Of a stretch of 64,000 bases of DNA, positions 5,162 through 51,230 are shown one piece after another. Below the pieces are notes generated by a model. That model ran no database searches, had not been told where the DNA came from, and was given only the letters and a program-made list of their open reading frames with translations. Source of the stretch: Styela clava. Taxonomy: Eukaryota. The stretch spans positions 7,998,001-8,062,000 of the forward strand of contig NC_135251.1 in NCBI RefSeq assembly GCF_964204865.1, in the 5' to 3' direction. The first letter of the stretch is position 1. Every line of letters starts with the position of its first letter. The position numbers and the translations under genes are program-made.

Positions 5162-6512
5162 ATGATGTCTTATCAAAATGTAATCGCAAAAATTAATAAT
5201 AACACTGAAAAGTGCACTGACTTCTATGACTTTGCTGAATCTCATGGATATTTTGAGAGAAAACTAAATGTGAACGTAACTCCTCAATTGGAGGAAATTG
5301 ATTTTTATGGAGGTGAAAGAATAATTGAATATGATTATGTACCAAAGTCATCTAAACGACCGAAGCATCTAGAATGGGAAAGAGAAAGCGGGATCAGAAA
5401 AGAGACTCAACTGGATGAATTGTTTGACAACTTCAAACATGGTCATGTCTGTTTTGTGGGGCCCCCTGGATCGGGAAAGACAACACTCATGAAAGCAACA
5501 TCCAGAGATGTCATGCATGGAAAATATTTTCATAGAATTATCAAGATGGTTTCATACATAGAATGCAAACAATTTATGAGAAACAGTAAAGTAACCGCAG
5601 CGGAACTAATATTTAACAATCTCACAAAAGAAGAAAGAAGTCAAGCAATAGACATTGCAAAAACTCACCCAGAGGAAGTTTTGTTTTTGCTCGATGCCTT
5701 GGATACTTTCCAATATACTGTTGATGGAGTTTATGAAGTCATCGGCTTAGATGAGCCTGCATATCCTGAAGTAATAATGTGGAATTTTCTCTCTGGAAAA
5801 TTATTTCCTGGCTGTCGCATTATATCGTCCAGTCGTGAACATTCCATCAGAAATTTTTGGGGAGAAATTCGACCAAACAAGGTCATTGCACTTGCTGGAT
5901 TAACAATGAAGTCAATCAAAGAAATCATTTCTGGATATGAAGGAGATGAAGAGGCCGAGAAAATAATGGAATTTCTCAAGATTGAAGCTCCATTACTCTT
6001 GTTTCTGTGCACTACACCAGTGATGCTTGTTTACACATTGATAGCATTGAAATTCAAATCTGACTTCAAACCAAACACCATGAGTGGTATTATGATTGTG
6101 GTCATGCAAAGCATCTTACGATCACCCCACACTCACCAAGAGATTACTATGGAAGTGTTGGGCAAATTAAAAGATCTATCATACATTGGGACAATAGAAC
6201 GCCGAGTTCTATTTACAGAAGATGATTTTCGTCAAGTTCATCTAAAACCAGAAGAAGCAACCGATCTTGCAATCCTGGCTCCTGGAGGAATATACCGTAA
6301 AGTTTTTCAAGGAATCCACCTTCTTTACTTTCAACATCAAACTTTTCAAGAAATGCTCACATCATTCTATATTCTTGGACTGGATTTAAAAACGTTCAGG
6401 GAGTTTGTGGATGAACATCTTCATACGGGTTACTTTGTTTTCGTCAGAAGAATGATCTGTGGATTTTTATTAAATACCAGAGTTTATAAAGCAGCAGGAA
6501 TTTTACTTGAAG
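5162..6512 (+). CDS. NLR exon 1: NACHT NTPase with helical and winged-helix domains
   Basis: Walker A GPPGSGKT, Walker B VLFLLDALD, sensor-1 IISSSR, LCTTP (GxP-type) motif and WHD motif YFQHQTFQEML. Donor GAAG/GTATTG at 6513. Confidence 0.93.
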
Positions 6513-9500
6513 GTATTGTGATGTTTATTGTTTAACTTGGATTAAAATTCAAGCTGGTGCCATTTTTTTTATTCAAATCCGAGATTAGTTAGATATTGTC
6601 ACTTCAATAGGTATTGTTAAGTCACTTCAAAGTTTGATATATTACATAAGAGACCTTGTTCATTGTTTATCATCTACTTTGAAATAGTTTGAATTTTTTC
6701 AGATGTGAATATTGGTTTGTTTGAATTAATAACTAAACAGTACAATTGCTTAGCAGTTAAAGTATTAAACTTTTTAAGTGTATTGGCATTGTAGGTTGCT
6801 CATTTCAAGAAACAGTAATCTTATATGTAGCTTAACAGCATGAGTTTGTACAGAGCATTGTTCGGAGCCACATTTATTAATGCTGTAATTCTTGGCAATA
6901 GGGGCAAAAGTTTAGATGTTGCTATTATGTTCTATTGCAAAACAAAAAGTAGCCAAGTCTTATTATGACACATCAAGCATTATTATTGCTCATTTTACAC
7001 TGGATTTGAACTAAAGCTTTAAGCTAGGGGGGAATCTGAAGTGCAGTGACAAATTATTATTACCCAATACATTGATAGACAATGGCTAACTAGATTAAAC
7101 CTTCCAATCACTAGTTTAAAAAAGATGAAAGTTGATGTTATTTATATGTCAACATTACTGAATGGTAACTCATTATTCACTCATACGCAGGTATCATCAG
7201 TATAAATATATTTTTATATTCCCACAGAAATTACGGATCTTGAAGAAAAACGAGATATTTTCAAGAAAAGTCTGCAATCACAACTCAAAAAAATATCAGG
7301 CGGATCAGATCTTCTGGAAGTTTTCACTGCAATGAACGAAGCCAAGGATGGAATGAGTGACATTGTCAAATCATCTCTTAATGAAATTAGCATGACTGGT
7401 CATCCTCTCTCCATCAGCGATATTCATGTCATTGGATCAGTAGTTTCTTACTGCACATCACTAACATTGGATTTCACTAGATGTGATCTCAAGTCAGCCT
7501 CACTTCAGACTCTCGCATCTGGATTAAAAGGATCAAATGCGAAGGTAGAATTTCTAATATTAAATTCTCAAAAAAAAATTCATGTTTATGTTTTTACCTT
7601 AAATAAGGCTTTAGACTAGTAGCGTATATTTTGAGAGTTACTACAATATAGTTGAATTTCACCATATATTAATTATATGTTGAATTCTATATCAAAATAT
7701 TTTGGTTTGAAAGTGTTTAATGAATTGTCACACACAGAAAGTTGTGGTGGACCTGGTTTTAAACCTGAAATCTGTGGTCCGTGGTACAAACGCAATTAAT
7801 ATAGGTATATTTCTTATTTGGTAAATGCTTACTGACTACATGGTATGTGCAAAACAACATGGAGAAGATTTTTTAGCATTAATTTCTTTATGTTGTTTTA
7901 TTGTGTCTTGTCTTTGAACAAGACTCCAGGCACTGATCTTTAGCGAACTATGATTTACCGACGGCTATCGCTAACTGGTAGAAACGATAAATGTAAAAAA
8001 AAAATGTCCTTGTCTCTTTGCGTCATATTTTCCAATTCCTAATTTTGCATAAAGCATGCCAACACCGTTTTTGTGAATTTAGAAACGTCGAACCAGATAA
8101 GTAGGATAGGTAAATAATGTATTTTATAGAAATTTCTCGCGATATTGGGAAGAAATATATATTATTTTGACCACGTAGAAATGCTTTTATTGCCGATTTA
8201 TTCATGTGCTAGTATCAGTGTTTTAACCCCAAGCTGAGTTACGTAAATACTCAACACTGAGTATTCAAGAGATTGCCAATTTGCAGAGCTTTTAATTATC
8301 ATTTTATATGAAAGTAACACCGACACGATCTAAAATTAAAGACATGAAAATGTCAACCATCCGCTTCACAAATATCGCATCCCGGGGTCAGTAATGTTAA
8401 TATTGTCCGCTTAGAATTGGGACCGTAATTTACAAACTGCGGTTCAAATCCTACACAGAAGATAAAAATGAGAATAAAATTAATTTGTGTAGTGAATGCA
8501 CTCCTTAATAGTTGTCTCTAACATATTCGCCGATGTGAACTAACAATTCTGTCCGACATATAAAAACCAAACTACGATATCGGCCGTTGCGTGAGAATTA
8601 ATATTTATATAAAAAAGTGATTTAATATAATTTAACAACATTAATTGGAATATCGGCCGCTGAAAAGATCGCAGTGATCAAAACTTTACTGCAGCTTTCG
8701 ATTATGAATAAATTATGAAATAAAAATCGCCGCATTGTTACGGAGTTTTCAGTCTTCAAGTAGAATCCGAAAAAACAAATACTTATTGTCACGGTGATTG
8801 TTTCGGTGGCCGTCATCCAAATTAATGTTTAAAATGACAATACTCATTATTCGGTGTTGGTTGAAAATATTCGAATATCTCTAGTAAAAAAATACGATTT
8901 TACCTGTCACTAATCACGGCGCATGTAAATAATCATTGAATGGCAATAAAAAATCAACTTAATTAACAATAAATTTCAAGTAATTGTTTCACATTTAATG
9001 CATTTGATCGGCGCTACATGCGAGCATGTTGTTTGTAAATATAAGCCATGATGACTCTTCTGCAGGGGTGGGTAACATACCGCCCTCGGGCCGCGTCATG
9101 CCCGCAACGAGATTTTGACCAGCGCGCTGACTGTTTTCAACCACACTCTGTAATGTGGTCCGACGCATCATTCATGAAAGTTGCCTATCACTCTACTCTC
9201 ACCGCACTGTCAGTGCAAGATGGTGAAATAAACAATTGCCCTAGTGAACAAACAATTGCGTTAGCACACTTGTTAAACAAACAATATAAGGTCAAAGCAG
9301 AGAGCGTTGTAAACATTCCCCACTACTGTTATTGGTTATATTTAGATTCTAAATATAAATAGATTTTAGATTAGGATTTTTTTAGATTTAGATTTTTTAT
9401 ATTAAGTTTAATTAACCATGGAATACCCCAAGAAACGTGAAGTTGACACAGAGAGGGGTCGAGCATGTAACAAAGATTGGATACCGAAGTATTTTGAAAT

Positions 9501-12500
9501 AGGACTTGCAAACTCACTAAAAAACACCTTAAGTCAAAGAGAGGCGGGTTACACGTAACTGTGGAATTTGCTGTGAACGATCATGCATTTCAGTTTATTA
9601 AATGCATTTTTACGTCGTCGTGAATAGCACTTTTGGTGTAATGTTTTAATTTCACCATAACCCCCTCTTGGGAAAATCCTGGCTATATCATTCAAATATA
9701 ACCAACTATATATTACACTTCCTATTAATATCAGATTTGCTATACTTGTTATATGATCATTTCGTTCAACCAGTATTAGGTTTGCTTAATATGTGTTCAT
9801 GGTTTAAACAATTTACATTCCTTTACCCTCTGGAATGTTTCATTGGAGTCCCGCTCCATCAAAAAGGGGTCTGTCCATGCTTAATTTGTTGATGATTTTA
9901 CCATTTTAATTTAATTTTAAAATATTTTTTCGTTCTTTGTCCAAGGTTTAAAATTTTGCCATTCTAATTGAATATTGAGTGGCATTCCATTTTCCACAAT
10001 CGGCCCAACAAGATTTTAAAACAGTTTAAATATGATCTTAAATTGTTCTTTCATTATAGATCATGAAGTTGTGGCTGAATAAAAACACAAACATGGGAGT
10101 TGAAAGTTTAACATCAGTTGGACAAATACTTTCCAATCAATCCTGTGTTGAAGAGTTGGGCCTTGGCAACTGTAACTTGTCATCAGATCAACTACAAGCT
10201 TTCAAATCCTCGATAGGCAATAGAACAACGGTGAGTTACAATGGTCAATCCATAGTGAACTTTTCTTGAATTTATTGTATAGCACAGTCTATGGGTCACC
10301 TGAAAATCTTTTTGGGTCGCTTGTTTTAGAACCAGAAATTATTTCCAGTAAATTTTATTGTTTTTTTCATATTTGGTATTGTAATGTTTCTCAATAGTAA
10401 TTTTACATGTGGAAGGTATCACAGCGTTAAAACTTACTAGCAGCTATAAATAGTAAATGGCAGCAGCCAATAAATAGTAAGTAAAAATAATTGTTTTATT
10501 TTAATCATTTAAATCTGTGGCCATAAAAGCACTACATGCAGTTTAGTGTGTGAGAATATCCTTGGATCGCTTGGTTTTTCAAAATTTATTTTTTTTTAAA
10601 AAATTTAGTCACTTGAAAAAAAAAGATTGGGAGCCACTAGTATAGCAATCCCTGTAATTTACAGTTACCTCTGTCATGCAAAATGCGGAGTCAAATAAAA
10701 AATTATTTCAGCTGATTTGGAGTCAAGTCAATTAACTCTAAATTAATTTTTTCATTTATTTGATGATTTCGGTAAGTAGGGAGATAACATCTCATAACTG
10801 GAATATAATTGAACTTTTAAAGAATAATTTTTGGGGAAAAAGACTAAACTTAGGAATTCGGTGTAGATTTTGGGGGTGCTAAAGTTACAGGCACTTGTGT
10901 TATGGTTTTTATTATTTATTCAATAGTGTAGTGTTTTACTTTCTGCTGAGTACAAACAACAATATCCTTGATGGTTGTCTCATATAATCTCTGGTGGGCA
11001 ATGTTGGTTGGTTAGCTGCAAGGGTTATACTCTTGAATATTTGTCATGCATGAAACATCACACAATTGATCATAAGCATAAAAATAGGGTACTTTGAAAT
11101 CTATCAACCTAAAGTAATAATACCTTGAAATAGGCCATGTTAATATCAAAGTAAATATTTCAATATTTTTGTTCTGTTTTATGAGTATTAATAAATTCAT
11201 AATTGCTCCATCATTCATTTTCATGCAGTTGTTAACATGGGATTCAACTTTTGTGAATTTACATATTTTAATTCTGATATGTCTAGTTTTTTCAGATTTT
11301 GTTTTCAAATTCCACGGTATTGGCTATGGAATATTAATGGTATATTTTTCATCAAAAACTACTTTCAGTTTGAAAATGTTCATAATTTTTTATTTCTCAC
11401 TCATTAAAGAATCATTATGGATTTCCTGATTCATCAATTATTCTTGTCTCTTTATAGCTCATGAAGTTGTACCTATATGGAAACACAAACATGGGTGTTG
11501 AAGGTTTATTATCAGTTGGACAAATACTTTCCAGTCAATCCTGTGTTGAAGAGTTGGGCCTTGCCCATTGTAACTTGTCATCGGATCAACTACAAGCTTT
11601 CAAATCTTCAATTGGAAATAAAACAAAGGTGAGTTACAATGATCAATTTATAGTAAACTTTTCTTGAATTTATTGTACAGTACATTCTAAGGGTCACCTG
11701 AAATTCTTTTTTTTTTTTATTTATTTTTTGCAACACAAATATTTTTTAATAAAGTTCACTGTATTTTATCTTGGTATAGTAGTGCTGCTCAATAGTTATT
11801 TTATATGTGGAAGGTATCATAGCGTTAAAACTTAGCAGCAGCCATTTTGTTAAAATAAAACCATGCCACAATTTCAAAAAATTGCTTTTGGCAAACAAGT
11901 GAAACTTTCTTCACTAGTGCAACTTTGAATTAATTTCTGTTGAAATAAATAGTATGTAAAAATGATTGTTTTATTTTAGTCATTTATCTTTGTGGCCATT
12001 AAAAGCACTTAATGCCGTTTAGTATATAAGCATATAATTGGATCGCGGGGTTTTACAAAATTAATTTTTCTGAAATATTTGGTCGCTTGTGGAGAGGGTG
12101 GGAGCCACTACCACAGCAAATCATGTAATTTATAGTTACAACTGCCATACAAAATGTGGAGTTATATAAAAACTATTTGAGCTGATCCAGAGTCGAGTCT
12201 AAATTTTTCATTTATTTAAAGATTTGGGTAAATAGTAAGGTAACATCTCACTACTGAAATATAATTGAAGTTTTGAAGAATAATTTCATGGAAAAATAAT
12301 TAGCAATTCGGTGTAGGTAGAGAGTTAAAACTACAGGATATTTTTATGAATGCTAATTCCGATATTCCAATAGTGTGATATTCGAAAACTTTATTCGGTT
12401 TGGCCATCCCTGGTCACTCTCATGCAACATTTTTATTTTTATACTGACGTAGTGTTCTACCTTCTGCTGAAAACAAACAACAATTTTCTTGATAGTTGTC

Positions 12501-15500
12501 TAATATAATCTCTGGTGGGCAATGTTGGTTGGTTAGCTGCCAAGTTCATACTCAACTATAATAACAGACACAGATTTGAATAATTTTTTCGTCATGCATT
12601 AAACATCGCACAATTAAACAAAAGCATAAAATAGGGTACTCCGAGTAATAAACTTGAAATAGCCTGTGCTGATAACAAAGTAAATATTTTAATATTTTGT
12701 TCCGTCTTGTGCATATTAATGATGCCGTAATGGCTCAATTGGTCTTGTGCAGTTGTTGACATTTGTTAACAAGGGATTCGGCTATTCTGCATTTACAGAT
12801 TTTATTTCTGATTATCTATTTTGTAGTTGGATATTGTTTTAACGAGACATCTGTAGAATATTACTAGTATATTTTGCATAAAAAACTACTTTTACTTTAA
12901 AAATGCTCATAATTTTTCATTTCTCACTCAGTGAAAAACCATTTATATCTTTCGAGGTTTATCAATAACTCTTGTCTTTTTATAGCTCATTAATTTGTGG
13001 CTGAGTGGAAACACAAACATGGGAGTTGAAGCTTTATCATCAGTTGGACGAATACTTTTCAATCAATCCTGTGTTGAAGCCTTGTACCTTGCCAACTGTA
13101 ACTTGTCATCAGATCAACTACAAGCTCTCAAATCATCGTTGGGCAGCACAGAGGTATAACACAACAATAATTTTGTTTAAAAGGTCGGAGGAAATTGGAT
13201 TGCACTGTGAAATTATGGAAAACTTCTGAAATTTTAAATTTATCTTTTATTACACCTTGTGTTCGATGATTTGAACTTGTGCAATCTGGAATGGAAACAC
13301 AGTCAAATCTAATGCTTCAGATGCTAGGTCATCACACTCATGCATGTAAATTTATGATTCTCATGCTATCCTATCATCTTCAAAAGCTGATGTCTGTTTC
13401 AAGTGTTTATAAAAATAGAGAAAAAATAGATTAGAATTTGGAACAGAAGGTAATGATCAATAATAATAATTCTAAAAGGTACTTATTTCTAACATTGAGG
13501 GGTTGGAAGACAAAAGCATTCCTGTTTTTGAAATTGTAATTTACCTATGTTGCTCTGAGTTTGAAATAATTTTACAATTTTGTTTATTGATTCGAATTGC
13601 TATCACGATATGAAACACAATCGATTTGACCACAAAAAATGTCACTTGACTAAAACATTGAAATTTTTTATATATTGATTCTCACTCGATAATAACTGCC
13701 AACCTCTGGCACCAGGCTATATTTGAAGTTACAAAAGCGTGTTAGCTTTCAAAATGTGGATTTTGACCAAGTTTCACCCAATTAAAAATGAATTTCACTA
13801 TGTTGTGTATTAATGCCAATTGCTACCACTTCATTAAATGCAATGTTTTTGACCTACAACCCCAAGGCCATCCAGAGTTGGGTCAGCATTTTATGACGTA
13901 TTACTGTTGTCAACTTTATTACCGGTATATAAAAACATTATAAGATGCAAAAGAATCACTTTCATAATTTGTATGAACTACCGTATTAGAATAATTAGAT
14001 GGTTACCAGTCTGAGCCACTCAAATTTCTGAATAGAAAAAACTTGAAGCACTATAATTATGCTTGATCAGGAATTAAAAATTTTTTAAAAATATTTTCAA
14101 TGAAACTTTTTCACAGATATAGCTGAGTTTTTGGTTCAATTGACATCGGCTTCATCACAATTTCACCCAATGTGATTTTTGTATTAGATGGAAAAAACAA
14201 AACCCGACTTTCAAATATTCTGTATTTTAAACTATATTGATGGATAACAATTTTTCTTCATCAGTGTTCGCTATTAGTGCACTTTTTTGCGAAAACTGCG
14301 AGACATTTTCTCTATTTTTTTTTTTACTTTCAAGGCACCTTCACACTCATAATTTTCTTAAAGTGAACACTGCTTTTAATACTGTATTGAAATTATGAAT
14401 ATCATATTATATAGCGGCCTACAATAAAGTAGGATTTTCCAGAGTCAACATTATTATTTGAAACTTAAGTCTCAAATGGCAAATATATTCAGATTTTTTT
14501 GTCTTATAGTGAGCAAAGGCAGGTTAAAACTTATTTTTACTTTTGAAATTTATACCCGCAAGTTTGACTGTTTTGATATCATAACAATTTATCAATATTT
14601 TTGTTCTGTTTTATTGATTTTATAATTGTGCAAGTATTCGTTCTTATGCAGTTATTAGCATGTGATTCAACTATTCTGAATTTACAGATTTTAATTTTTA
14701 TATGTCTAGTTTTGTAGTTCAGATTTTGTTTTCAAATTCAACGGTATTGTTCGTGGCAGTGGTTCCCGACCATTATGGCTTGTGGCCCCCTTCCAGCGGC
14801 TCGTAGAACTCATGGCTATCCTGTTCATCATTCCAAAAAACTTGGATGTGTTCGAGTGTATTATGTATTTTCGACCTTCTATGGAATGCAAAAACAGACC
14901 ACAGGCTAGAAAGTCAAACTTTGTACTATTGGAAAGAGAAACTTGCAGGCTTTTTCTTTGGCAGAAACCCAAATTTGGCAATGTTGCTTCCTTGTCAAAT
15001 CTAACTCGCTAGGCAGCCAAGGCACTGAATGTAAACGTCTTTTACATGGAAAAGATTTTTTTGCACAGTGGATTTGGAGTTTGGATGAACGTAATGATTT
15101 ATTGTTTATCACATATGAGCAACGCAGGCATTGTGCACATTGCTTCAGGGCCCCCGTTAAGAACCACTGGTCTATGGAATATTCATGGTTTATTTTGCAT
15201 CAAAATTACTTTCAGTTTGAGAATGTTCATAATTTTTTTCTTTCTAATCCCTCAATGCACCATATCTAAATTTCTGGGTTCATCAATTATTCTTCTCTCT
15301 TCATAGATTATGAAGTTGTACCTGAGTGGAAACACAAACATGGGTGTTGAGGGTTTATTATCAGTTGGACAAATACTTTCCAATCAATCCTGTGTTGAAG
15401 AGTTGAGCCTTGACAACTGTAACCTGTCATCAGATCAACTACAGGCTTTCAAATCATCCTTGGGCATCACAAAGGTATATCACAATAATAATCACATGAT

Positions 15501-18500
15501 TAACGTATTTTAAAAAGGTTGGAAGAAAATTTGATTTTGATTTTGTAACAGATTAAGTTTCACACTTTCATAGCCAAAATTGGATTACATGGTGAAATTA
15601 ATGAAAAACCTCTACAATTTTAAATTTATCTTCTTTAATAAATTTTCAGGCCCTCTCATTTATTTGAAAATTTCTTTGAAATATATTATAACCAATTCTT
15701 ATGACCAATCGGTTCTGTTGAGTCTTGTCCGATGATTGTGTGAAATACCTAAAATTGTCCTATATTGTACGTAAATTACATTAATTTTTTTTTTCGATAA
15801 ACTCCCAAGTTTATTCAATTTTGAAAACTTTTTATTACATCTTAACATCTTAAGTAAAATTTGGAACAGAAGGTAAACAGATTTTAAAGAATAAACGATA
15901 AGTGCTAATAAATCTAAAATGATATTTATTTCCAACAGTACAGGTTTTATTTGTTCAATAACCACATTTATTTAATTTTCACGTGGTCAAATGTGGGATG
16001 TCCACTTGTATAAGCTTAAGTCACAGCTTATTACATTTTCAGTCACCTAAATGCTATTAACACCATAAATCATTTGACATTATCTACAATGAAAAGAGTA
16101 ATTCTGATATCATAAATGGTCGCACTTTTCACTTGTTTGTTAGTTAATCCCAATGAGACATATTAGGCCTTTGAGACAATAATTATTCATGCCTTTTCAC
16201 TGCAAACCTTGTGCAAATTTAACAATTAGTCTTTTGTACAGAATTTATAAATAACCTTTCAAATCAACCCTTGCCTTCTGGAACTCGGCAAGTTTTTTGA
16301 GGTCACCAGAGTCTGATAACCAAATTATAATTTTGACTATGTTGCTCTTACTTTTGTTCAATGATTACGAATGCTAACGATTTGTGAAATACAATTGATT
16401 TGACCACAAGAAAAGTCAAACAACTAAAACATTGAATTTTGATAACTGTTGTTCCTCATTTGATGAAAACGCACAATTTCTGACACCAGGCTCTGTTTCA
16501 ATGTTACAATGCTTTTCTGTGTAATAAGAATAATATGGGTTTGGCAAAACTAGGACGAATATGACTTTTATGTATTTTATCCATGCCATATTGATTTTTG
16601 TATTTGTTTATTTCAACAGATTGATCAGTTGTATCTGGGTGAAGATCGTATTGCAAACAATGAAGATATTGTTGCAGTTGCAAATCTGCTTCCTAATGTT
16701 ACAGAGAGTTTGTGGTTGGGAAGATGGAAAATAGCTGATGAAGATAAAGAAATATTACAGAATCAATTGGATGAAATTGGATCGGAGGTTTGAAATTCTT
16801 TTTGGGATATACAAAATATAAAATATGGGTCAGACATAAATCAATAATTTGTGTAGAAACTGAAAGTCTAAATTGTTCACGCTGAACTGAACACTTTAAA
16901 GTCCACCAAAGTATATGTTATTTCCATTCGTGTCATTTCAATTCTTTAAAGCAATTACCAAAATATTATATCATTGTGGTCAATTTGATTGTGTTGTACA
17001 TTAATGTTTAATGTTTGCTTTATTGGACACGTTTATTGGCCATAACGATCGTTTCAAAATTTTGTTGTTATTGTTATTTGTCTCCGTCTCCATTTTTAAA
17101 AAATCGCTTTTCTCTTCGAATACTGGACCAATTGCTTTGATATTTTCAGTGGTTAAAGATAAAATTTTCCTCCAGAAGGGTATTACTTTTTTTTCGCTAT
17201 GACGTCATCAAAATTATTGCCACTGGGTGGCGCTACGTGTCCATATATTTGAGCATAGCTCTCTTGTTTTAATTATGTTCATTTGTGTTTTGATAAAAAG
17301 AACAATTTCATAGATTCATTTGTGTTTCTGTTTCGTCAAGCAAAGTCTAAATTTGAAATGAATTGTATTTACTAATTTTTTGCAGTAATTATCATTTTAT
17401 TGAATTACCAAGCGTGGACTGTCAATTTAGTGAGTTATCAAAGAAAGCAAATTTTAAAAGTTTCTCAATAAATGTTAATGAGTAAATGACTGGAATTCCA
17501 GCATTGTCGTTGAAACCCTTCAGTGCTAATTTTGTATACAATTTATTCATTATAGAAACTAGAAATTTGCTTGGATAGATTCACAAAACTCAAAAGTCGA
17601 AGGATATCAGCAGCTACAATCAAAGTTTTTTCTAAACAACATCCAACCACAACTTCAAAAACAGAATTTGGTAAGTTATGAATATTTTTTCAAATTGAAT
17701 GGTTCTATGGCACCAATATCGCTGCTTGATAACAAACATGGGTTTTACTTTGCGTCTCCCTTCACCGTGGGATGCCATTTTTATGTTTTTTTTTCCTAGT
17801 TCTCATTCCAATCAAGTGAATTTACATTTTAGTGAAAAATAAACCACTGGCTCACATGATCACTACATCATGAATTTCTGCCCAATTGTTTAATATTTCC
17901 ATAGTTATCATTATTATATTATTCTTGTCATCAAGTAATTTTCATCGTTCTCGGAATGCTTATTGAATATACTTGCTACTGAAGCTGGCATATTATTCAA
18001 CGCTGTCTTGCAACATGTTAAATTTTGTCATTCTCTTAACAGATTTGGTATTTTTATCGTGTTATTGTCTATTGTACATATTGCGGTATCAAACAAAATT
18101 TTTGCTGTGATTAAATATACCGTAAATCTAGAATATGCAAAATTAATTTTATTAAAGATATAAAATAATTGCTTCCAAGTAGTTACACTTGGCTGTCGGA
18201 GCATAGAGCTTATAGTTACAGAATCTTAAATTTTTCTGATAATCGCTCACTACTCTTTGTATTTGGTTTTTGCTTGAAAAAGCCACTCACAGCTGTTTTA
18301 GATAACCCGGCTTTGCTGCTACTCACTACAATTTTATGTTTAATTTTGTTTTTGAATGAAATGGCCAGAAATAATATTGAGGTCACAGCTTTTATTTAAA
18401 ATAAAATATCTATTTTTAGCTTTGCCTAAAATTGAAAATGTTTCATCTCAAAGAAGTGGATCCGACATTCTTTTGACTTGGAATGAAGTATCTGACGGCA

Positions 18501-21500
18501 ACGTACTATACAACGTAGAAATCTTCTGTGATGATGTGAAACTTGAAGGGACTCACACTACAGAGGTTCCTCAGTATAGAATGGAGTCACCTACACTTGG
18601 TAAAAAATATATTTTCCAAGTGTGGGCCAAAGATGAATTGGGAAACTCTAGCATCAAAACACAGTCAAAGAATGTTATCAAATGTAAGTTATGGCCATTA
18701 ATCATTAGGTAATGTAGCAACCTTATAATTCAAATAGTTACTTATTGATATCGATCAGTAAGTATGTTCATAGGTATTTGTCTGTCTGTCTGTTAGATCA
18801 TTTTCGTATGTTACACGATATCTCACGAAAACGAGGTTGAATCTTCTCCATTTTGCATGTGCATTTATCATATCTCGGACCAGAAGCCTATTGATTTTTG
18901 ATGAATCATGTCAAATAATCAGCGAGTTATTAGTTAATTAGTGATGGGACATGCAGTGTTGCAATTGAGTCAGAGCGAAGGATACAAGCCGCTAGATCAA
19001 TAAGTCGGCGGTCTCCGTGCGCTATCTCGTTTGTCCGTTAGACACTTTCGTATGTTACGCGATATCTCTCAAAAGGGATGTTGAATCTAGTCCAAATTTT
19101 GCATGTGCATTCATCATATCTCGGAACAATAGCATATTGATTTTGGATGGATTATGTCAGATAATTAGCGCGGTAATAATTAATTAGTGATGGGACACGT
19201 GGTGTTGCTATTGAATCAGAGCGAAACAATCAAAATCGCAGTTTCTGTTTTGGCGGATCCCTTAACCTTCGTCGCTGCGAACGATTGTGTGCGTAACATT
19301 GCCCTGTCTGCAATTGCGAGAATAATCATTGTGAAATCGTACTCCGTCAAAATTGTCAAGAAAAATATTGTACATGAGGAAGATCGATAAGTCGGCGGTC
19401 TCCAATCGCTATCTAGTTTATTGTTTTAATAAATAGTCAGTGAGTGTATCTGCATGGTGGCGGCCCATCATCATTATTAGAAAAATATTAGGCATTTTAT
19501 TTTTTAGACGACTTATCGGCATAAAATCAGTGGTTCAAAATGGCCTCACATTTTTTCGCAATGAAAATGGTTTACATCCATTGACCAAGGCACAGTATTT
19601 TTATTCTATCATTCTTGGTGGTTCAAGAATTGGTTACTGACATTCAACATTACTATGTCAAACTGTGATGTGAAATAATTATGCAGAAACTACTACTTTA
19701 CTGGCTCCTAAACACCACCCCTTTACCTTAATTGCAATACATGAAGGTATATTGTGCTCATATTGTGTATATTGGTCATACAATCAATCTAGATTTATGA
19801 GGCCAAATCTTTTCTTTATTCCTAAACATGGAAGTTGCTCAATACCAGATTGAACTGGGAAAAAACATAATTGAAAATTCTAAAACAATACACAAGGAAA
19901 TTACTCAACTCATGGTAACAAATATTTTGTCGCATTTCTAGTTGCTGAGCCTGCTTTGTCTAAGTACTCATTTCCTACTTTACATAACTTTGGAACAACC
20001 TGTTAAAATTCATTTTTTGTTGCATTATAAAACAAATCTATTTTTTAGTGGTGAACGTTGAAGTTGCCGGCGGATCCATGAGACTGAACGAATGCAAAGT
20101 CACGTTTCCTGGTGGAACTTTCAACAAACAAACAAAGGTCTGGATGTCGGTTGGAATTGACAATTCACTGTGCCCAGAAGGATACATTGGTATCACACCA
20201 GTTTTCGATATCAGTGCAGATTCCGAATTCCTCAAAGATGCGATCGTGCAAATCCAGTCATGGTGTGTCGGTCTAGAGAAAGACAAAATTGACATATTAC
20301 ATTTCTCAAGTAAAACTGATTGGAATATTATTAAACCTCGCCGAATCACTGGGGATAACAGCATAGAATTCCGATGCAGAAAGTTCAGCCCAGTTATGGC
20401 CTTCATCAGGTGGTTGCTGTTTGGAACAGTGGAGCTTCTTATGGAACACCGTCTTTATATTTTAAACAAAAACAAATTTCATTTTGCATTTTTCACATGT
20501 GGTGAGACTGTTCAGAACACTGTCAGACATTATTATAAAGACCTGGGTGCACAACTTGCTCCTTTTCATCTTCCTCAGATTCTCTTACAAATTGGAGACA
20601 GAGTTCGCATGAAACTCCAAATTGACCGCGGACCAGAAAATTTGCATTTCGATTTTCCTGATGGCCATACTTTCCTGGTAGACAAACAATTCCTAAGAAA
20701 GCAAAGAAATGAATACACGGTTCAGCTTTTCCCTGTCCGCGACCAATATCCCCAAAGTAACATCAGATACAAGATGGTTAAGGAAGGCAATGAACCGGAA
20801 ATTTGCAATCGTGATTTTGATTTCCCAGTGGAACGAATAGGTGAGTAATTCAGGGCTCTTGCTCTCGCCTCATGCAGTTTTACTATGTTGTTCAAGTTGT
20901 CATTCGACCACTCAACATGATGCAGGTATTCATTGTTAAAACGAGGCTTCCTGCCATAAAAAAAACTTTCTAGTTTGGCTTATTTTGTTTAGTTTCTAAT
21001 TCTGGAAACTTGTGTTGCCCAATCAACATTACTTTCGAAGTTGAAATAAAAATGAATATGATTCTAATGTGTATCTCATACTGTTTAGATATGCCAGGAC
21101 AACAAACTATCAATTTCTATGGAGATGTTCGTGTTGCAGGGAACATGAATATGAATGGCGACCGCCAACAAGCTTTACAAGATGTGAGTAAATGCAATAA
21201 ATACGTAAATAAATTATTTCTGAGAAACAGCTGGCAAAATTTCAATTTTAAACAAATCTAGTTCTATTCCTTCGTTATAATTGTTTGTGTTTTTCTTTAA
21301 AGCTATGTGTATGAAGTTATAATATTATTTTGAATAAGTTGTAATATTACCAAATTGTCCATTTTTTACACTTTCTCCTGTTATATGCACAAAATGATAA
21401 TATCACCATGAAAATAATCTAACAAAAATAAATTTATCAAATATAATATAAATAAATATATATAATATGAATATAAGCAGTGGTGGGATTCAGCCGGTTT

Positions 21501-21922
21501 GCACCGGTTGTTTAGAACCATCTCACAGAATTTTATAAGATCAGCGTACCGGTTAGCATTAATCAGTTTATTTGCTAAAAAATATGACTTTTTGAAACAG
21601 AACCGGCTGAAAAATATGACTTTTGTGATGGAACCGACCGACAAAAAATTTGAATCCCACCACTGAATATAAGATAATATACAACTCAATCTCATACTAT
21701 AAATATTCAATCATTTAATTTGACTAACAAAATATTATGCTGAAAGTGACAACTGTTTTTTATATTAAGGAACAAATCGAACAGAGAGAAGCAGAGCAGC
21801 AAAGACAGGCAGATGAAAACAGGGTCCGTGTTCCAGGATTGGCTCCCCAAATTCTATTCTTGTTCCTAGCTGTTTTTCTCCACTTTTTGTTGAGGTGGCT
21901 CACACCCGAAATAACCTTATAA
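5162..21922 (+). CDS. NLR-family receptor, NACHT-LRR-FN3-FIIND(ZU5-UPA)-RHIM-like-TM, ~1310 aa, 12 coding exons (5162-6512, 7228-7544, 10060-10230, 11458-11628, 12986-13153, 15307-15474, 16620-16787, 17556-17670, 18420-18683, 20049-20840, 21089-21183, 21770-21922)
   Basis: Every exon is flanked by AG/GT. Phases chain without a stop (1,0,0,0,0,0,0,1,1,1,0). Summed length is 3933 nt, or 1310 aa plus stop. An in-frame TGA at 5144-5146 lies upstream of ATG 5162. Joining all exons into one transcript is inferred from phase compatibility, not from RNA data. Confidence 0.8.
7228..7544 (+). CDS. NLR exon 2: HD2-LRR transition and first LRR
   Basis: Acceptor cccacag, phase 1 start. Encodes ...LSISDIHVIGSVVSYCTSLTLDFTRCDLKSASLQTLASGLK. 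Donor AAG/GTAGAA. Confidence 0.85.
10060..10230 (+). CDS. NLR LRR exon A (171 nt, two RI-like LRRs, phase 0-0)
   Basis: IMKLWLNKNTNMGVESLTSVGQILSNQSCVEELGLGNCNLSSDQLQAFKSSIGNRTT, flanked by ttatag and gtgagt. Confidence 0.9.
11458..11628 (+). CDS. NLR LRR exon B (171 nt, phase 0-0)
   Basis: LMKLYLYGNTNMGVEGLLSVGQILSSQSCVEELGLAHCNLSSDQLQAFKSSIGNKTK, flanked by ttatag and gtgagt. Confidence 0.9.
12986..13153 (+). CDS. NLR LRR exon C (168 nt, phase 0-0; the ORF track shows the wrong frame here)
   Basis: LINLWLSGNTNMGVEALSSVGRILFNQSCVEALYLANCNLSSDQLQALKSSLGSTE, flanked by ttatag and gtataa. Confidence 0.88.
14757..15169. mobile_element. hAT (Charlie-like) element inserted in the intron upstream of LRR exon D
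   Basis: Ends CAGTGGTTCCCGACC / GTTAAGAACCACTG. Absent from the paralogous intron (empty site ggtattggctatggaat near 11316). Degenerate TSD. Confidence 0.8.
15307..15474 (+). CDS. NLR LRR exon D (168 nt, phase 0-0)
   Basis: IMKLYLSGNTNMGVEGLLSVGQILSNQSCVEELSLDNCNLSSDQLQAFKSSLGITK, flanked by tcatag and gtatat. Confidence 0.9.
16620..16787 (+). CDS. NLR terminal/capping LRR exon (168 nt, phase 0-0)
   Basis: IDQLYLGEDRIANNEDIVAVANLLPNVTESLWLGRWKIADEDKEILQNQLDEIGSE, flanked by tcaacag and gtttga. Not in the ORF track. Confidence 0.8.
17556..17670 (+). CDS. NLR linker exon (basic, Thr/Ser-rich)
   Basis: KLEICLDRFTKLKSRRISAATIKVFSKQHPTTTSKTEF, flanked by ttatag and G/gtaagt. Phase 0 to 1 bridges the LRR and FN3 exons. 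Confidence 0.7.
18420..18683 (+). CDS. NLR fibronectin type III domain exon (phase 1-1)
   Basis: P..V.....SDILLTW......LYNVE......YRMESPTLGKKYIFQVWA....GNS shows the FN3 W, Y and L..GxxYxFxVxA pattern. Confidence 0.85.
18736..19420 (+). mobile_element. Two head-to-tail Helentron/DINE-1-like copies in the FN3-FIIND intron
   Basis: Same family as 262-575. Units are roughly 18736-19030 and 19031-19420, each ending taagtcggcggtctc... Confidence 0.7.
20049..20840 (+). CDS. NLR FIIND exon (ZU5 followed by UPA-like domain; phase 1-1)
   Basis: ZU5 signature GGSMRL..CKVTFPGG...ITPVFDI....F.K.A.VQI, then ILHF...KPRRI...KFSP, then about 150 aa of beta-rich sequence. Confidence 0.8.
21089..21183 (+). 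CDS. NLR mini-exon encoding a G/N/Q-rich RHIM/amyloid-like motif
   Basis: DMPGQQTINFYGDVRVAGNMNMNGDRQQALQD, flanked by tttag and gtgagt, phase 1 to 0. The exon is well supported; the motif call is inference. Confidence 0.7.
21478..21665. mobile_element. hAT MITE in the last NLR intron
   Basis: TIRs CAGTGGTGGGATTCA / TGAATCCCACCACTG with a perfect 8-bp TSD AATATAAG. Confidence 0.93.
21770..21922 (+). CDS. NLR last exon: short charged helix plus C-terminal hydrophobic (tail-anchor-like) segment
   Basis: EQIEQREAEQQRQADENRVRVPGLAPQILFLFLAVFLHFLLRWLTPEITL*, after acceptor tattaag. Confidence 0.75.
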   Translation, partial: EQIEQREAEQQRQADENRVRVPGLAPQILFLFLAVFLHFLLRWLTPEITL

Positions 21923-22961
21923 TTTGTTTCTGGCTGCATTTTATTAAACTCCATTGGAATCGTGACCAAGGGGAATCTCATACAGACCTTTCAACCACTG
22001 GTATATACTAAGTTTAGAATTGCAAGTTGTTTGCAAATTCACAAGAAGTCATAAAAAGAAACATCAAGTAGGTTGTAAAAGAATGAATGGCTGGTATAAA
22101 AACTGTTGGACTTGAGTGATTGACCTCCGGCTTCACCTAGTGGTCTGACATAATGTTCCAGAGAGTGCAAACTGGTAGCTGAGGACAGTGTCACTTTGCC
22201 CCTAATCTATGTAAAATGATAGATTTGCATTATAAATTCTAGTTGTATTATAATAGTGATACATGTACAACAATACAATGGCATGCAATGCTTATTGTAA
22301 ATTTCTATTTTTTGTTTTGTGTATGTCAGAATTTTAAATTTTCATGCACTGTAATCAGCTTTTCTTGTTTATCATAATTGACAACACTGAACTTAATCTT
22401 GCTGTATTGGAATGGAATAACAATCGCATAAATAATTCAACTTATCCAAACCTTAATCCTCCCTGATGTATAAAAGTTATCTTTATAAAACTTTGTATTT
22501 CCCTGAGTTTTGGGTTTTCTTTATAACTCCGTGTGTTTCTGCAAGTTTTAAAATATGAAAAAAATGAAAACAACAAAAAAAAATTGCCAAGTTGCCAATT
22601 TTCCAAGTTGCTCAGAAATGAAGGAGAATCTATGAGTAAAAAGTATAAAAGACCACTGAAGCCCCAAAACCTACTGACACCACAAGTCCATAAGGCATCA
22701 TAGGGTAAAATTACTTCCTGTTGTTAACACTGATTGGTGTGAGACTTAAAAGTACTCATGGGCGAAGCTTATGGAGTATCAGCTTTTATTTTGATTCTTT
22801 TGCCTATTAAAAATATTTTTTGTTTTTATTTTATTAAATTACTTCCAATATTCAAAGGGTTTCTGATATTAACCAATGTCAGATTATATATTTATATAAA
22901 CTAATAGGGAAACTCCACATTTAGGAGGTTTTGAATTTTCTTTTTTATATTTCTCTTAGAT

Positions 22962-25836: not shown

Positions 25837-27393
25837 CAGTGGCGGCGCGTCAATAGGGCCAACCGGGGCAATGCCCCGGTTGTTTTTTCGGTATAATAAA
25901 AAATATTCGAAAAATACCTCAATATCGGTTGCACAGACTGTCTACACTAGCCATATTCTCCCGACATGGTTCATTTTTCGCTCGCAAAGCCTTCGCCGAA
26001 CGTCGTCGCGGCGACGCCGATTCTGCCCCGGTTGCTCATTGTATATCGTATTCTCTTTTTTATCTTCCACTCGCCGCGTTTGTCTCGTTTGTTTTCTGTT
26101 TCTTTTACTAAATCATCGGGGCCGATCGGGGCTAGCCCCGAAATTATGACGACATAATGCCGACGTTTCTTACAACAACGTGTTGACATATTCACGCATT
26201 CCTTCACGTTCGTTGGTTGCTTGAAGAGTTGATAGTTTCCTCGCCTTCGTTTTTCTCGCTTTTTTCTCCACAATATTCTATCACGTGGATGTATTATAAG
26301 GCTAATGGATGGAGCGTCTGTGCAGTCGTGTATTTCAGACTTCTGCGATGCTGTATCTCGTATCCGGGAAACAATAAAATACGACGACACATGGAGTGCT
26401 TCTTTACGTCGCTGGCAAACAACGCAGCGTTTGATTTTGTCTGCATAGGAATGCTGTGACATTCTGGTGAATCAAATAGGCGATCGTCTGCGCACTGAAC
26501 ACCTTGCCGCGTTCTCTTTGATGAACTCCAAAAATTTTTCAAAATTTGCACGTCAATTTCCCATCCATTTGTTGGCTACTGTCTCCAAATTTTACCCCAT
26601 GATGAACGTGGGTAAATTGGAAAATGAATTGCGATGTATATACACCAATCAAACTTTTTTGAACATCACATCAACTTGCGCGCTCTATGGGTTCCTCATA
26701 GATAACACTCTAGTAACTACCTTTGCGGCGTCTGCAAAATTTCTGGACATCATCTTGACGACGCCTATTTCTTCCGCCGACGCAGAGCGAACATTCAGCA
26801 CGCTGAAGCGTATTAAAACGTATCTCAGAAACACAATGAAGCAAGATAGATTAAATTCCTTGGCTGTTTTATCCATTCACAGAGACGTTATTTCTGAGAT
26901 GCATGACTTTAATCAGCGCGTTATTGAGCATTTTGCTTCCAAGAAACCGCGGCGTGTTGCATATATGTTCAAGCAGTAGAAGTCTAGCAGCATATATATA
27001 TATGAGTGAGCGACGCATGTCCTTATCTTTGCATTAAATTTCCTTTCTTCATAGTAACGTTTTAAACCTTATTTTAGGTTTTGTCTGCTTTCCCGAAGTT
27101 TCTGTTAATATGTCATTGTATTTATCTGGGTAAATATTGCCTTTCCTTTTGAAAGAGGTTTCAAAATAAACTATGTCCATATTTATTAATCCCTTGACTT
27201 GGACCGGTTTTAAAGACACTTTCTTATCGTTAAAAATTGTCTCTTTTGCCGATTGGTTGTTACCGATGGAATGGTTTTTATACTCATAAAATGATGGGAG
27301 AACTTACAGCGTTCATCCTGTCCCCGTAGATGGGGGTGACTTGGTCCCGCAGTAGCTTGCCCCGGTTGTCAAAATGACCACGCGCCGCCACTG
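25837..27393 (+). mobile_element. Internally deleted hAT DNA transposon (ZMYM1-like transposase type)
   Basis: TIRs CAGTGGCGGCGCGT / ACGCGCCGCCACTG, subterminal GCCCCGG repeats, imperfect flanking repeat ggc(c)aacgag. Confidence 0.9.
26440..26979 (+). pseudogene. hAT transposase C-terminal dimerisation domain remnant
   Basis: TPISSADAERTFSTLKRIKTYLRNTMKQDRLNSLAVLSIH. An in-frame TAG lies just upstream of ECCDILVNQ and no N-terminal transposase is present. Confidence 0.88.
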
Positions 27394-35413: not shown

Positions 35414-37033
35414 ATGGCTGATGAAGAAAATAAAGAAATTCCCGCTGCAGAGGAAGCCCCACCTGCACCCGCAGAGGAATCTGCTGAAAATGTTGAGCCT
35501 GCTGCTACAGATGAACCTGCAGCAGTCACTGAAGAAGCAGACACTCCACCAGCAGAAGGAGGGGAGGTAGAAGTCAAAGAAGAAAGGGAAATACCACAAG
35601 AACAGGAGGGCGAGAAAGTTGATACTCCAGAGGAAGGGGAGGAAAATCCAGCAGAAGTTGCTGAAGCCGCTGCTGAACAGGCTCCTGAAGGTACAGAGGA
35701 GGCTGCAGGGGATGCTGCACCTCAGGAGGAACACAAACAAGAAGGGGTAGAAGGTGAAGTAGAAAAGCCAGAAACTGAAGTACCACCTGAAGGTGAAGAA
35801 CCAGTAACAGAAACAAAACCTGAAGAGGAAACAGAAAAAACGGAAACACCCTTGCCTCAAAACGAGGATTTCGATGCTGGGGAAAAAGACGAAGCGACGC
35901 TTGATGTTACCGGTGAAGTTTTATCAAGAGAAGGAAGCCCACAACCCCCTTTGGAAGGACCTGAAGAAATTAGGCCAGACTCTCCGAAACGAGAGTCCGA
36001 GGAGCGAGGCGTCATCTTTGAAGAAGAAGAAGAGGAGGAAGAAATCCCGAGATTTAACAGAGAAGAACTGATCGAAAGATACAATAAAGCTTTACAAGAA
36101 CGAGAAATGTTGAATCAGAAAAATCACGCTCTACAAAACAAACTAGCGGAATATTTTAAACGTAAAAAGACAGAAGACAACCGACAAGAAGTTGATCGCA
36201 ATGTTACAGACCAAGAACAAAGATACATGAAATACATCAGTAATTTAGAAGAGCTAAGAAACCAAGAGACAGCAGAAAGAGAGTCGTACGATGAACAAAT
36301 AGAGGAAATGAAAGAACGTAAAGCTGTGAAACAGAAACTAGTCGAACAAGAATGGAATGAATACTCAAATTTCAAACGTTCTGTTGCTCTCGCTTCTGTA
36401 AACAGCCGAAGCGGTCGACCTTTGACCCAGAAAGAATTTGAAATTTACGAGATTAATGAGGTCAAAAAAGAAGCCGAAGTTTCTCAAGTTCGACTTGAGA
36501 ATATAAAGTTGCGGAATCGATTACGAAAACGAGAATTGCAGTTGAAGCAAAAAGAAGAACTAGCTGAAGGATTACATCTCATCGATTTTGAGCAGCTGAA
36601 AATCGAGAACCAAACTTACAATGAAAAAATTGAAGAGCGTAATGAGGAGCTTATGAAACTCAGAAAGAAGATAACAAGTACGGTACAAGTTTTGACACAT
36701 TTGAAAGAAAAACTACAATTTGTACAAGGAGAAAACCAGGTATCCAAACAAGAGCTAGCACATATTGAAGCAGAAGTTGCGGGGAAGCGTGACATACTCT
36801 CTCGTACAAAACAAGCGAGGGATGCATTACGTCATGATAATTCAAAATTACAACAAAAATGTGGTCTGCTTGGAAATCGACTTCTTCTCCGAGACTATGA
36901 AGAAGGCACAGACGAAATTGCCGATCTAAGTCACCGCCTTGATCAACTAAAGAGAACTCATGCAGAACTAACGCTTAGTATTAGCGGTGTTAAAAAGAAG
37001 ATCGAACAAGCGAGAGCACAGTCGCAAAATTAA
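35414..37033 (+). CDS. CCDC96: Coiled-coil domain-containing protein 96 (CFAP184), intronless CDS
   Basis: E/A/P-rich low-complexity N-terminus. Conserved C-terminal LAEYFKRKK, EQRY and EELAEGLHLIDFEQLKIENQTYNEKIEERNEELMKLRKK (DUF4201-type). Confidence 0.93.
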   Translation: MADEENKEIPAAEEAPPAPAEESAENVEPAATDEPAAVTEEADTPPAEGGEVEVKEEREIPQEQEGEKVDTPEEGEENPAEVAEAAAEQAPEGTEEAAGDAAPQEEHKQEGVEGEVEKPETEVPPEGEEPVTETKPEEETEKTETPLPQNEDFDAGEKDEATLDVTGEVLSREGSPQPPLEGPEEIRPDSPKRESEERGVIFEEEEEEEEIPRFNREELIERYNKALQEREMLNQKNHALQNKLAEYFKRKKTEDNRQEVDRNVTDQEQRYMKYISNLEELRNQETAERESYDEQIEEMKERKAVKQKLVEQEWNEYSNFKRSVALASVNSRSGRPLTQKEFEIYEINEVKKEAEVSQVRLENIKLRNRLRKRELQLKQKEELAEGLHLIDFEQLKIENQTYNEKIEERNEELMKLRKKITSTVQVLTHLKEKLQFVQGENQVSKQELAHIEAEVAGKRDILSRTKQARDALRHDNSKLQQKCGLLGNRLLLRDYEEGTDEIADLSHRLDQLKRTHAELTLSISGVKKKIEQARAQSQN

Positions 37034-50228: not shown

Positions 50229-51230
50229 TTACTTGTACTTTTTCTCGCAATCCCTCACCTTGTATTTCCTATTATTTTTTTTTGTAAGTAGTTTTGTCCA
50301 AATTTTGATTGCCCTATAAGCAATAATTTCGGGTATCCAACTTGCTATCCAAGCATGAAATGCATGGATGTAGTATCCGTTCGACAACCTGGATTTTCCT
50401 ACAGTTTTTAGAGAATGGCTTGCAAAATTTTCGGCATTCTCTACAATCTTCAAGTTATATCCTATCATTGGTTGTATACTTTGAACAATAATTTCATTCT
50501 TTTCGCACTCATAGCTCAAAGCTTGAGAAAAATGGTCGCCAAATCTCATTGATGTGGAATATAAGGCGCAAAAGGGTAAGACAAATTGTGAGGCAGCTGG
50601 TGAAATGTTTATAACAAGACCGGTTCCTCTCTTTATCATATTTGGTAACACCAGTTGATTGACATTCAACGGAAAAAAACAGTTGCAAGATATAAAATCC
50701 AAACTTCTTTTCGGCCGTTTTTTCCGATCTTTGGTATTTCCAAAGCCGTCGATTGACCGTTCGAATTCTTGCTCTAATCCGACATTGTTGACCACAATAC
50801 CAATTTCTAAATCTCGAATGGAATTTCTGATTGCGTCATAGGCTGATGACGTCATCGTTTCTCCGTCCATTACTTCACCTGTTTTTGTAAAGTCGACGAC
50901 AACATATCGCGCTTCGACACGGCATCCGCTTTCTATTTCCTTCGCAAGCTTTTGTAGCTTGTCTCGATGTTGACCAACCAACACTATACTCATTCCCATA
51001 TGAGCCAACTCCTTTGCAAAAGCTTTGCCGAGGCAATCCGTAGCATTTGTTACAAGAGCCCATCTTCCGAACCTGCGATAGTCCACCGCTGCACTAGTAA
51101 AATATATCACAAAATGCGTGTACAGATTAAAAACCGTTCTCGCGCTGACATAAATCAAGGCTAAAACCCCTGCGAAATATAACGCACTACTGGTTTCCAC
51201 CAAAATATTTATGACCGAACAGAGACCCAT
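50229..51230 (-). CDS. HSD17B12/HSDL1-like short-chain dehydrogenase (very-long-chain 3-oxoacyl-CoA reductase family), probably catalytically impaired
   Basis: N-terminal TM, G.WALVT.ATD..GKAFA.ELA..G, LEIGIVVNNVG, LVLPNM..RG.G.VINIS, FSQAL.YE and C-terminal KKxx. TGxxxGxG and YxxxK are degenerate. Confidence 0.85.
   Translation of the reverse strand: MGLCSVINILVETSSALYFAGVLALIYVSARTVFNLYTHFVIYFTSAAVDYRRFGRWALVTNATDCLGKAFAKELAHMGMSIVLVGQHRDKLQKLAKEIESGCRVEARYVVVDFTKTGEVMDGETMTSSAYDAIRNSIRDLEIGIVVNNVGLEQEFERSIDGFGNTKDRKKRPKRSLDFISCNCFFPLNVNQLVLPNMIKRGTGLVINISPAASQFVLPFCALYSTSMRFGDHFSQALSYECEKNEIIVQSIQPMIGYNLKIVENAENFASHSLKTVGKSRLSNGYYIHAFHAWIASWIPEIIAYRAIKIWTKLLTKKNNRKYKVRDCEKKYK

Follow-up and report, generated by a model that had tools for sequence, protein, structure and literature searches.

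To our knowledge, among animal sensors that cut themselves to release a C-terminal effector fragment, only NLRP1 and CARD8 have been studied well, and what both of them release is a CARD. In this work we analyse a gene of the sea squirt Styela clava, located on the + strand at positions 5162-21922 of the window (the whole stretch of 64,000 nucleotides that was analysed, C2:7998001-8062000 in the 377-Mb assembly of this species), whose predicted product joins a NACHT domain, leucine-rich repeats (LRRs), a fibronectin type III (FN3) domain and a ZU5-UPA tandem to a short glycine/asparagine-rich (G/N-rich) motif and a C-terminal transmembrane (TM) segment. We see about an even chance that this protein is NLRP1-like up to the UPA and something else after it, namely a self-cleaving, membrane-anchored receptor which releases a UPA-motif-TM fragment. 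The wider finding is the gene family to which it belongs, together with the interchangeable outputs of its members.

Based on what is known of NLRP1 (especially the rodent NLRP1B, with the order NACHT-LRR-FIIND-CARD) and of CARD8, the likeness lies in the NLRP1-type succession of NACHT, LRRs and a ZU5-UPA tandem with a Phe/Ser site at the junction, in an output placed C-terminal to the UPA and in an N-terminal death fold not being needed. A PYD is present in primate NLRP1. In CARD8 and NLRP1 the serine following the Phe is the nucleophile and the Phe itself a structural anchor, and His-270 of CARD8, 27 residues before Ser-297, is required for cleavage (PMC3210808). NLRP1- and CARD8-like proteins were found in all surveyed clades except the vase tunicate (one tunicate was examined) and the lamprey (PMC11258412). 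Unlike NLRP1 and CARD8, the sea-squirt gene has no CARD but a G/N-rich motif and a tail anchor, it has an FN3 domain before the ZU5, its sequence is too divergent for Pfam FIIND and it belongs to a lineage-specific family of around fifty genes. Lacking the C-terminal CARD, the gene does not count as an orthologue of NLRP1, and may be called NLRP1-like in its working at most.

The ZU5-UPA fold is also common to the supramodules of PIDD1, UNC5 and the ankyrins, and PIDD1 additionally pairs LRRs with a self-cleaving ZU5; these proteins differ from the sea-squirt one in ending in a death domain and in having no NACHT. For the ZU5 domains of UNC5 and the ankyrins, we know of no self-cleavage. ZU5/FIIND fusions with predicted autoproteolysis have been discussed for the TRADD-N proteins (PMC8195603). 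In sponges, ctenophores and cnidarians, NACHT-ZU5 proteins and TM-bearing NOD-like receptors (NLRs) have been listed, "with unknown function" (PMC12909245); they resemble our gene in bringing NACHT together with ZU5 and in having TM segments within NLR architectures, although that work describes no LRR-FN3-ZU5-UPA-motif-TM order, no cleavage signature and no effector swapping. The literature searched on FIIND in tunicates, ascidians and amphioxus yielded no description of the order NACHT-LRR-FN3-ZU5-UPA-motif-TM, and an earlier, preliminary description of this DNA likewise knew of no described NLR of this architecture. RefSeq, however, already holds paralogues.

For the motif, the closest described systems are the RHIMs (RIPK1, RIPK3, ZBP1 and TRIF), the Drosophila cRHIM and the fungal PP and HET-s motifs, with which it shares its shortness, its non-globular, G/N-rich character and its alternating hydrophobic residues. 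Kajava et al. reported many RHIM proteins in amphioxus, with the motif at positions usually held by death folds, while tunicates appear to have no RHIMs (PMC4262963). As in the amphioxus RHIM-NACHT proteins described there, the sea-squirt motif takes the usual place of a death fold in an immune-type protein; in contrast to them, it is found at the C-terminal side, after the UPA, instead of before the NACHT, and has no RHIM core. The coupling of a polymerising element to a membrane element recalls MAVS and the fungal HET-S, but by analogy only: their sequences and folds are unrelated to those of the gene, MAVS polymerises by its CARD and HET-S inserts an N-terminal HeLo helix.

Domain order and the ZU5-UPA module

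The gene lies in AT-rich DNA (30-36% G+C across it) and was modelled from stop-to-stop frames, a listing of splice sites and a direct reading of positions 17520-17720. The scattered small open reading frames (ORFs), which the preliminary description had spliced into one protein of ~1310 residues, do come together in this model as 12 exons, with GT-AG borders at every intron, agreeing phases at 11 of 11 junctions and no internal stop in any exon, adding up to 3933 nt including the stop, that is, a predicted 1310 codons plus stop. Residue numbers were obtained by arithmetic on the exon lengths, and the full-length checks were made on the RefSeq paralogue P0055 (Styela clava LOC120332063, 1262 aa), which is colinear with all 12 parts, including the motif and TM exons. 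Identity to P0055 is 80% for the NACHT exon, 80% for FN3, 58% for ZU5-UPA, 56% for the motif and 60% for the TM exon, and the LRR exons are 70-84% identical to the corresponding region.

Exon 1 (5162-6512; phase 1 out) contains the start codon, ~95 residues without a death fold, the NACHT (Pfam E 1.5e-20, residues 96-259) and helical domains, and is 80% identical to residues 1-448 of P0055; a direct reading gives a Walker A, GPPGSGKT, near residue 100, as in NACHT NTPases. The post-NACHT region and the first LRRs follow in exon 2 (7228-7544; phase 1 in, 0 out), which matches P0055 450-565 and P0052 496-620 at 66-70% identity. Exons 3 (10060-10230; phase 0/0, GT-AG borders) and 4 (11458-11628) encode LRR units of the ribonuclease inhibitor (RI) type with 57 codons each, and exons 5 (12986-13153), 6 (15307-15474) and 7 (16620-16787, the final LRR unit) have 56 codons each, exons 5 and 6 being again of RI type. 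Pfam LRR_1 gives only weak matches on these exons, one of them in exon 6, and the RI type was recognised through P0055, which matches the LRRs of NLRP5, NLRP14 and ribonuclease inhibitor in the Protein Data Bank (PDB); its NACHT and LRR parts together match the solved chains of NLRP5, NLRP9, NLRP1, NLRP3, NOD2 and ribonuclease inhibitor. Exon 8 (17556-17670; 38 codons, phase 0 in, 1 out) is a linker, found by direct reading, which the model requires because the LRR exons would otherwise be out of phase with the FN3 exon, and it is 62-70% identical to the linkers of P0054, P0057, P0003 and P0001.

Exon 9 (18420-18683) is assigned to FN3 by its AlphaFold2 (AF2) model, with seven strands and a mean predicted local distance difference test (pLDDT) score of 80, and by Foldseek, where every top match is an FN3 domain (template-modelling score up to 0.73); Pfam fn3 has no match on this exon, with weak matches to related sandwich families only. 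At least 96 copies of the FN3 exon are found in the genome, always just upstream of a ZU5-UPA exon. It is the best-conserved part of the family, with a mean column identity of 93% over 12 copies and, across the genome, an identity of 63-90%.

The AF2 model of exon 10 (20049-20840; 264 codons), built on an alignment of 33 relatives, has a pLDDT of 92 and a predicted template-modelling score of 0.84. In Foldseek it matches the ZU5-UPA-death domain of UNC5b (1.6e-9), rat NLRP1 (1.4e-7) and CARD8 (5.8e-4), as well as the ankyrin ZU5-ZU5-UPA-death domain, and VIA-align places it, over 234-252 residues, at Z 18.9 with UNC5b, 17.0 with the rat NLRP1 FIIND (236 residues), 16.3 with CARD8 (234 residues) and 15.8 with ankyrin-B. 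By its predicted fold, exon 10 is a ZU5-UPA tandem of the FIIND type. The ratio of nonsynonymous to synonymous substitution rates (dN/dS) of this exon against eight paralogues is 0.21-0.39, and the exon is under purifying selection. We reject a pseudogene on account of the intact frames and this dN/dS of 0.2-0.4.

In the model, a Phe-Ser-Pro (20384-20392; ~residues 1077/1078-1079), the predicted site of autoproteolysis, is located in the loop 111-115, between the last ZU5 strand (105-110) and the first UPA strand (116-121). Among 83 distinct family sequences, 78 have the Phe and 81 have a nucleophile right after it (Ser in 72, Cys in six and Thr in three), an exchange which keeps the nucleophile and is therefore expected of an N-O/N-S acyl-shift site. 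A His (20300-20302; ~residue 1049), 29 residues ahead of the predicted nucleophile, is conserved in 62 of the 83, against a spacing of 27 in CARD8, the equivalence of the two residues being one of spacing alone. The self-cleaving FIIND of the preliminary description is supported by this conserved Phe, nucleophile and upstream His, and agrees with the caspase and kinase-RNase outputs that follow the UPA in relatives (see below), cleavage itself being predicted from these features; the length then proposed for the C-terminal fragment, ~233 residues, is also what the exon lengths give, counting from the Ser of the Phe-Ser site to the C-terminus.

The C-terminal tail and its variants in the family

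After the UPA, the order is a G/N-rich motif of ~15 residues, a Q/E-rich spacer, the tail anchor and the stop. Exon 11 (21089-21183) carries the motif, NFYGDVRVAGNMNMN, at the place of the NLRP1 CARD, and exon 12 (21770-21922) the spacer and the anchor (~21836-21901), with six residues between the anchor and the stop. The hydrophobic segment, whose Kyte-Doolittle hydropathy averages 2.18 across 19 residues, is single and within about 30 residues of the C-terminus, and the N-terminus is polar on direct reading, as expected of a tail-anchored protein with no signal peptide. An ATTAAA that resembles a poly(A) signal, by pattern only, is found 21 bases past the stop (21943-21948). No exon has a Pfam match to CARD, PYD or death domain, the stop comes after the TM segment, the models of paralogues terminate at the equivalent position, nothing beyond 21922 matches the paralogue proteins, and the gene that comes next on the + strand is a cilia gene with no relation to this one, all of which bears out the earlier statement that the protein has none of these domains. 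Likewise, the order NACHT-LRR-FN3-ZU5/UPA-motif-TM is right in each of its parts, as judged by Pfam, AF2 and fold search, paralogue homology and hydropathy.

The motif alternates hydrophobic residues with G/N, as do the RHIM and PP-type motifs (compared with those of PMC7885112). Of the 30 closest genomic copies, 28 have a variant of it after the UPA, and it is retained even where the ZU5-UPA of a paralogue has fallen to ~25% identity, while the adjoining sequence diverges. Exon 11 has 14 close copies, and in every case a ZU5-UPA exon precedes the copy by a few hundred bases. The paralogues with an acidic tail read G-A-N-I-G-N at this place, which is nearer to G-phi-Q-phi-G. HET-s has two motif repeats in tandem. 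A distant ZU5-UPA relative, P0031 (Styela clava LOC120327120), continues after the UPA into two G/N-rich pseudo-repeats of ~25 residues, recalling that arrangement. Within exon 1, before the NACHT (5294-5340, residues ~45-60), there is also an I-D-F-Y-G-G-x-R-I, conserved in the paralogues, which is like the start of the exon 11 motif, I-N-F-Y-G-D-V-R-V (21106-21155); this likeness may be due to chance, or the two may form a matched pair, as in the fungal NLR/effector pairs.

Exons homologous to the TM exon are present in P0055, P0001 and P0054 and at loci L004, L017, L020, L023 and L028-L030, and TM tails recur in distant members of the family, including one sequence from outside Styela, which ends in a hydrophobic tail. 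At L020 and L023 (C2:2.308 Mb and 3.070 Mb) an in-frame stop is found right after the motif, with the TM exon still downstream, and the RefSeq protein P0003 ends exactly at this position; some copies may make a motif-only tail with no anchor.

The gene does not stand alone: it is one intact member of a lineage-specific family numbering about fifty, which RefSeq already contains under "uncharacterized protein". The ZU5-UPA exon has at least 87 matches in the genome, of which 63 reach an identity of at least 41%, all but three of these 63 (60) being free of stops; ~50 intact paralogous NACHT exons lie on the same chromosome, at 83-87% identity. In this subfamily and on this chromosome, 47 of 49 NACHT exons are followed on the same strand by a ZU5-UPA exon, 12.5-54 kb downstream. 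The array (C2:0.05-8.09 Mb) comprises ~51 ZU5-UPA and 49 NACHT exons at ~100-kb spacing, mostly on the minus strand, and the gene studied here is near its distal edge; it is among the most compact of the family, its NACHT and ZU5-UPA exons being 14.9 kb apart (median 34 kb). All named database relatives are Styela clava RefSeq proteins. Several further relatives were found on Logan and ENA contigs, two of which match the S. clava genome at only 31-35% identity and must therefore come from other species. A protein search with region 733-1001 of P0005 found P0005 only, and one with P0001 gave paralogues but no protein from the locus studied here.

The tails of the 30 closest genomic copies fall into several classes: the gene's own motif plus TM segment (seven copies); another variant of the motif, found in six copies, of which five have a TM exon that can be recognised; the G-A-N-I-G-N variant followed by an acidic tail (~14 copies); and a kinase. 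The ZU5-UPA exon of the gene is 88-90% identical to that of the acidic-tail copies, while its motif and TM tail are those of the class whose ZU5-UPA is only ~60% identical. This mosaic of ZU5-UPA and tail (20049-21922 compared with L002-L030) suggests exon exchange or gene conversion between paralogues.

Other relatives carry enzymes after the UPA. At two loci, ZU5-UPA and a caspase (Pfam 8.5e-40 and 1.6e-33) are encoded in one uninterrupted ORF of 580-586 aa (L031:1443-3182, at C2:5.94 Mb, + strand; L032:1754-3511, at C6:18.83 Mb, - strand). These fusions are direct, with no CARD between the two parts and no G/N-rich motif, and the RefSeq protein P0040 has three tandem FN3 domains in front. 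The RefSeq proteins P0002 and P0060, from two loci, have the order FN3-ZU5-UPA-motif-protein kinase-Ribonuc_2-5A (KEN), of the RNase L/IRE1 type; the exons of P0002 are on one strand within 6.4 kb (C1:30968800-30975236, - strand; L064/L025), and an intron of 3 kb follows the motif exon. Caspases and the kinase-KEN RNases (RNase L/IRE1) are activated by oligomerisation, and these outputs therefore fit a clustering led by the UPA after release, as in NLRP1 and CARD8.

Proposed mechanism and competing explanations

In the mechanism we propose, the ZU5 would cleave its own polypeptide at the Phe-1077/Ser-1078 bond, as happens in NLRP1, CARD8 and PIDD1, and the two halves would stay together non-covalently, with the whole receptor held at the cytosolic face of a membrane because of its tail anchor. 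If the NACHT-LRR-FN3-ZU5 half were then perturbed or degraded, or if a ligand changed the NACHT-LRR part, the 233-residue UPA-motif-TM fragment would be set free, self-associate on the same membrane by way of its UPA and its G/N-rich motif, and signal, or damage that membrane, by induced proximity. We infer cleavage, release and polymerisation at the membrane from the features described above, and an innate immune role from the type of family alone.

Several observations weigh against this proposal. Exon 10 has no match to Pfam FIIND, ZU5 or UPA at E up to 10, and only three of its 33 relatives reach Pfam ZU5 (best 2.7e-5); with no Pfam FIIND, ZU5, UPA or fn3 on the exons of the gene, these fold assignments rest on structure prediction. 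The top structural match is UNC5b, ahead of the self-cleaving proteins. The motif, called RHIM-like in the preliminary description, resembles the RHIMs in its pattern, but the strict core is absent (it reads G-D-V-R-V-A-G in the gene, not G-[IV]-Q-[IV]-G) and Pfam RHIM has no match in exon 11 at E up to 1. Both His and Arg occur in the tail anchor, for which reason the target membrane cannot be called. Finally, the RefSeq models of the paralogues P0003, P0053 and P0056 have no NACHT, and shorter products may therefore exist.

The first competing explanation, which we consider unlikely, is a membrane-tethered NLR without self-cleavage, in which the ZU5-UPA would serve, like that of UNC5 and the ankyrins, as a folded spacer or for interactions, the signal would come from oligomerisation of the NACHT and the motif would be a docking site. 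The structural ranking speaks for it, with UNC5b at the top and the ankyrins high, and so does the comparison of the ZU5-UPA family profile with the PDB sequences, where the ZU5 of ankyrin-1 (E 0.04) is the sole match and thus the only sequence-level link to a solved chain; TM-bearing NLRs of the kind reported in sponges (PMC12909245) are also in keeping with it. However, a scaffold would not need the Phe followed by Ser, Cys or Thr that is nearly universal in the 83 relatives, nor the His at a CARD8-like spacing, and a caspase or a kinase-RNase placed straight after the UPA is better explained by a released effector.

A second explanation, to which we also give a low probability, keeps self-cleavage and release but not the amyloid-like polymer: the fragment would work either by oligomerisation of its UPA alone or through a partner recruited at the membrane, and the motif would be a linear docking or regulatory element. 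The failure of the motif against the RHIM core and Pfam RHIM argues for this, as do the caspase paralogues, which, having no motif, indicate that the UPA may suffice for clustering. Against it stand the alternation of hydrophobic residues and G/N, like that of RHIM and PP-type motifs (PMC7885112), the G-A-N-I-G-N of the acidic-tail class with its nearness to G-phi-Q-phi-G, the conservation of the motif amid diverging neighbours, and the two tandem copies in P0031, as in HET-s.

That the exons form no single functional gene at all, being two adjacent units (NACHT-LRR and FN3-ZU5-UPA-tail) or a silent recent duplicate, is very improbable, for although RefSeq matches from the paralogue searches include no protein for this exact locus and the NACHT-less paralogue models point the same way, all 11 junctions are in phase, GT-AG and stop-free, these parts are united in the full-length RefSeq proteins P0055, P0052 and P0005, 47 of 49 NACHT exons have their ZU5-UPA exon, dN/dS is well under 1 and, as a weak further point, sequencing runs presumed to be RNA contain 20-28% of the words of 16600-22600, near the 26% that the coding exons make up there (untranslated regions uncounted).

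Surrounding sequence and meaning for the family

The neighbouring ORFs in the window are unrelated to the NLR gene. They comprise the C-terminal fragment of a hAT transposase (26467-26976, + strand) and, each apparently without introns, a CCDC96/113-like ORF (35414-37030, + strand), a CEP104 ORF (42555-45272, - strand) and a short-chain dehydrogenase ORF (50232-51230, - strand). A further death-fold exon downstream of the gene was considered but rejected, as these are the ORFs that come next and nothing past 21922 matches the paralogue proteins.

A cut-and-release design outside the vertebrates, driving other outputs, seems to be what this family represents. A tunicate NACHT-LRR-ZU5-UPA family with outputs other than death folds would make the release module older, or more freely reused, than has been assumed, and the family would offer a natural domain-swap set, with one release module joined to a membrane-anchored motif, a caspase or a kinase-RNase. 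If the motif were of the RHIM or PP type, it would return such motifs to the tunicates, where RHIMs were reported missing (PMC4262963), and would link the NLRs of animals with the amyloid signalling of their fungal counterparts.

More tentatively, and with less confidence than we place in the mechanism for the single gene, S. clava may possess a modular cut-and-release system, in which some fifty NLRP1-type sensors share one ZU5-UPA module and shuffle outputs activated by proximity (an amyloid-type motif with an anchor, an acidic tail, a caspase or an RNase L/IRE1-like kinase-RNase). Should this be true, the motif and anchor would be an animal counterpart of the self-templating passage from fungal NLR to HET-S, built inside a self-cleaving receptor, and sensing by functional degradation would predate the vertebrate inflammasomes or would have arisen independently of them.

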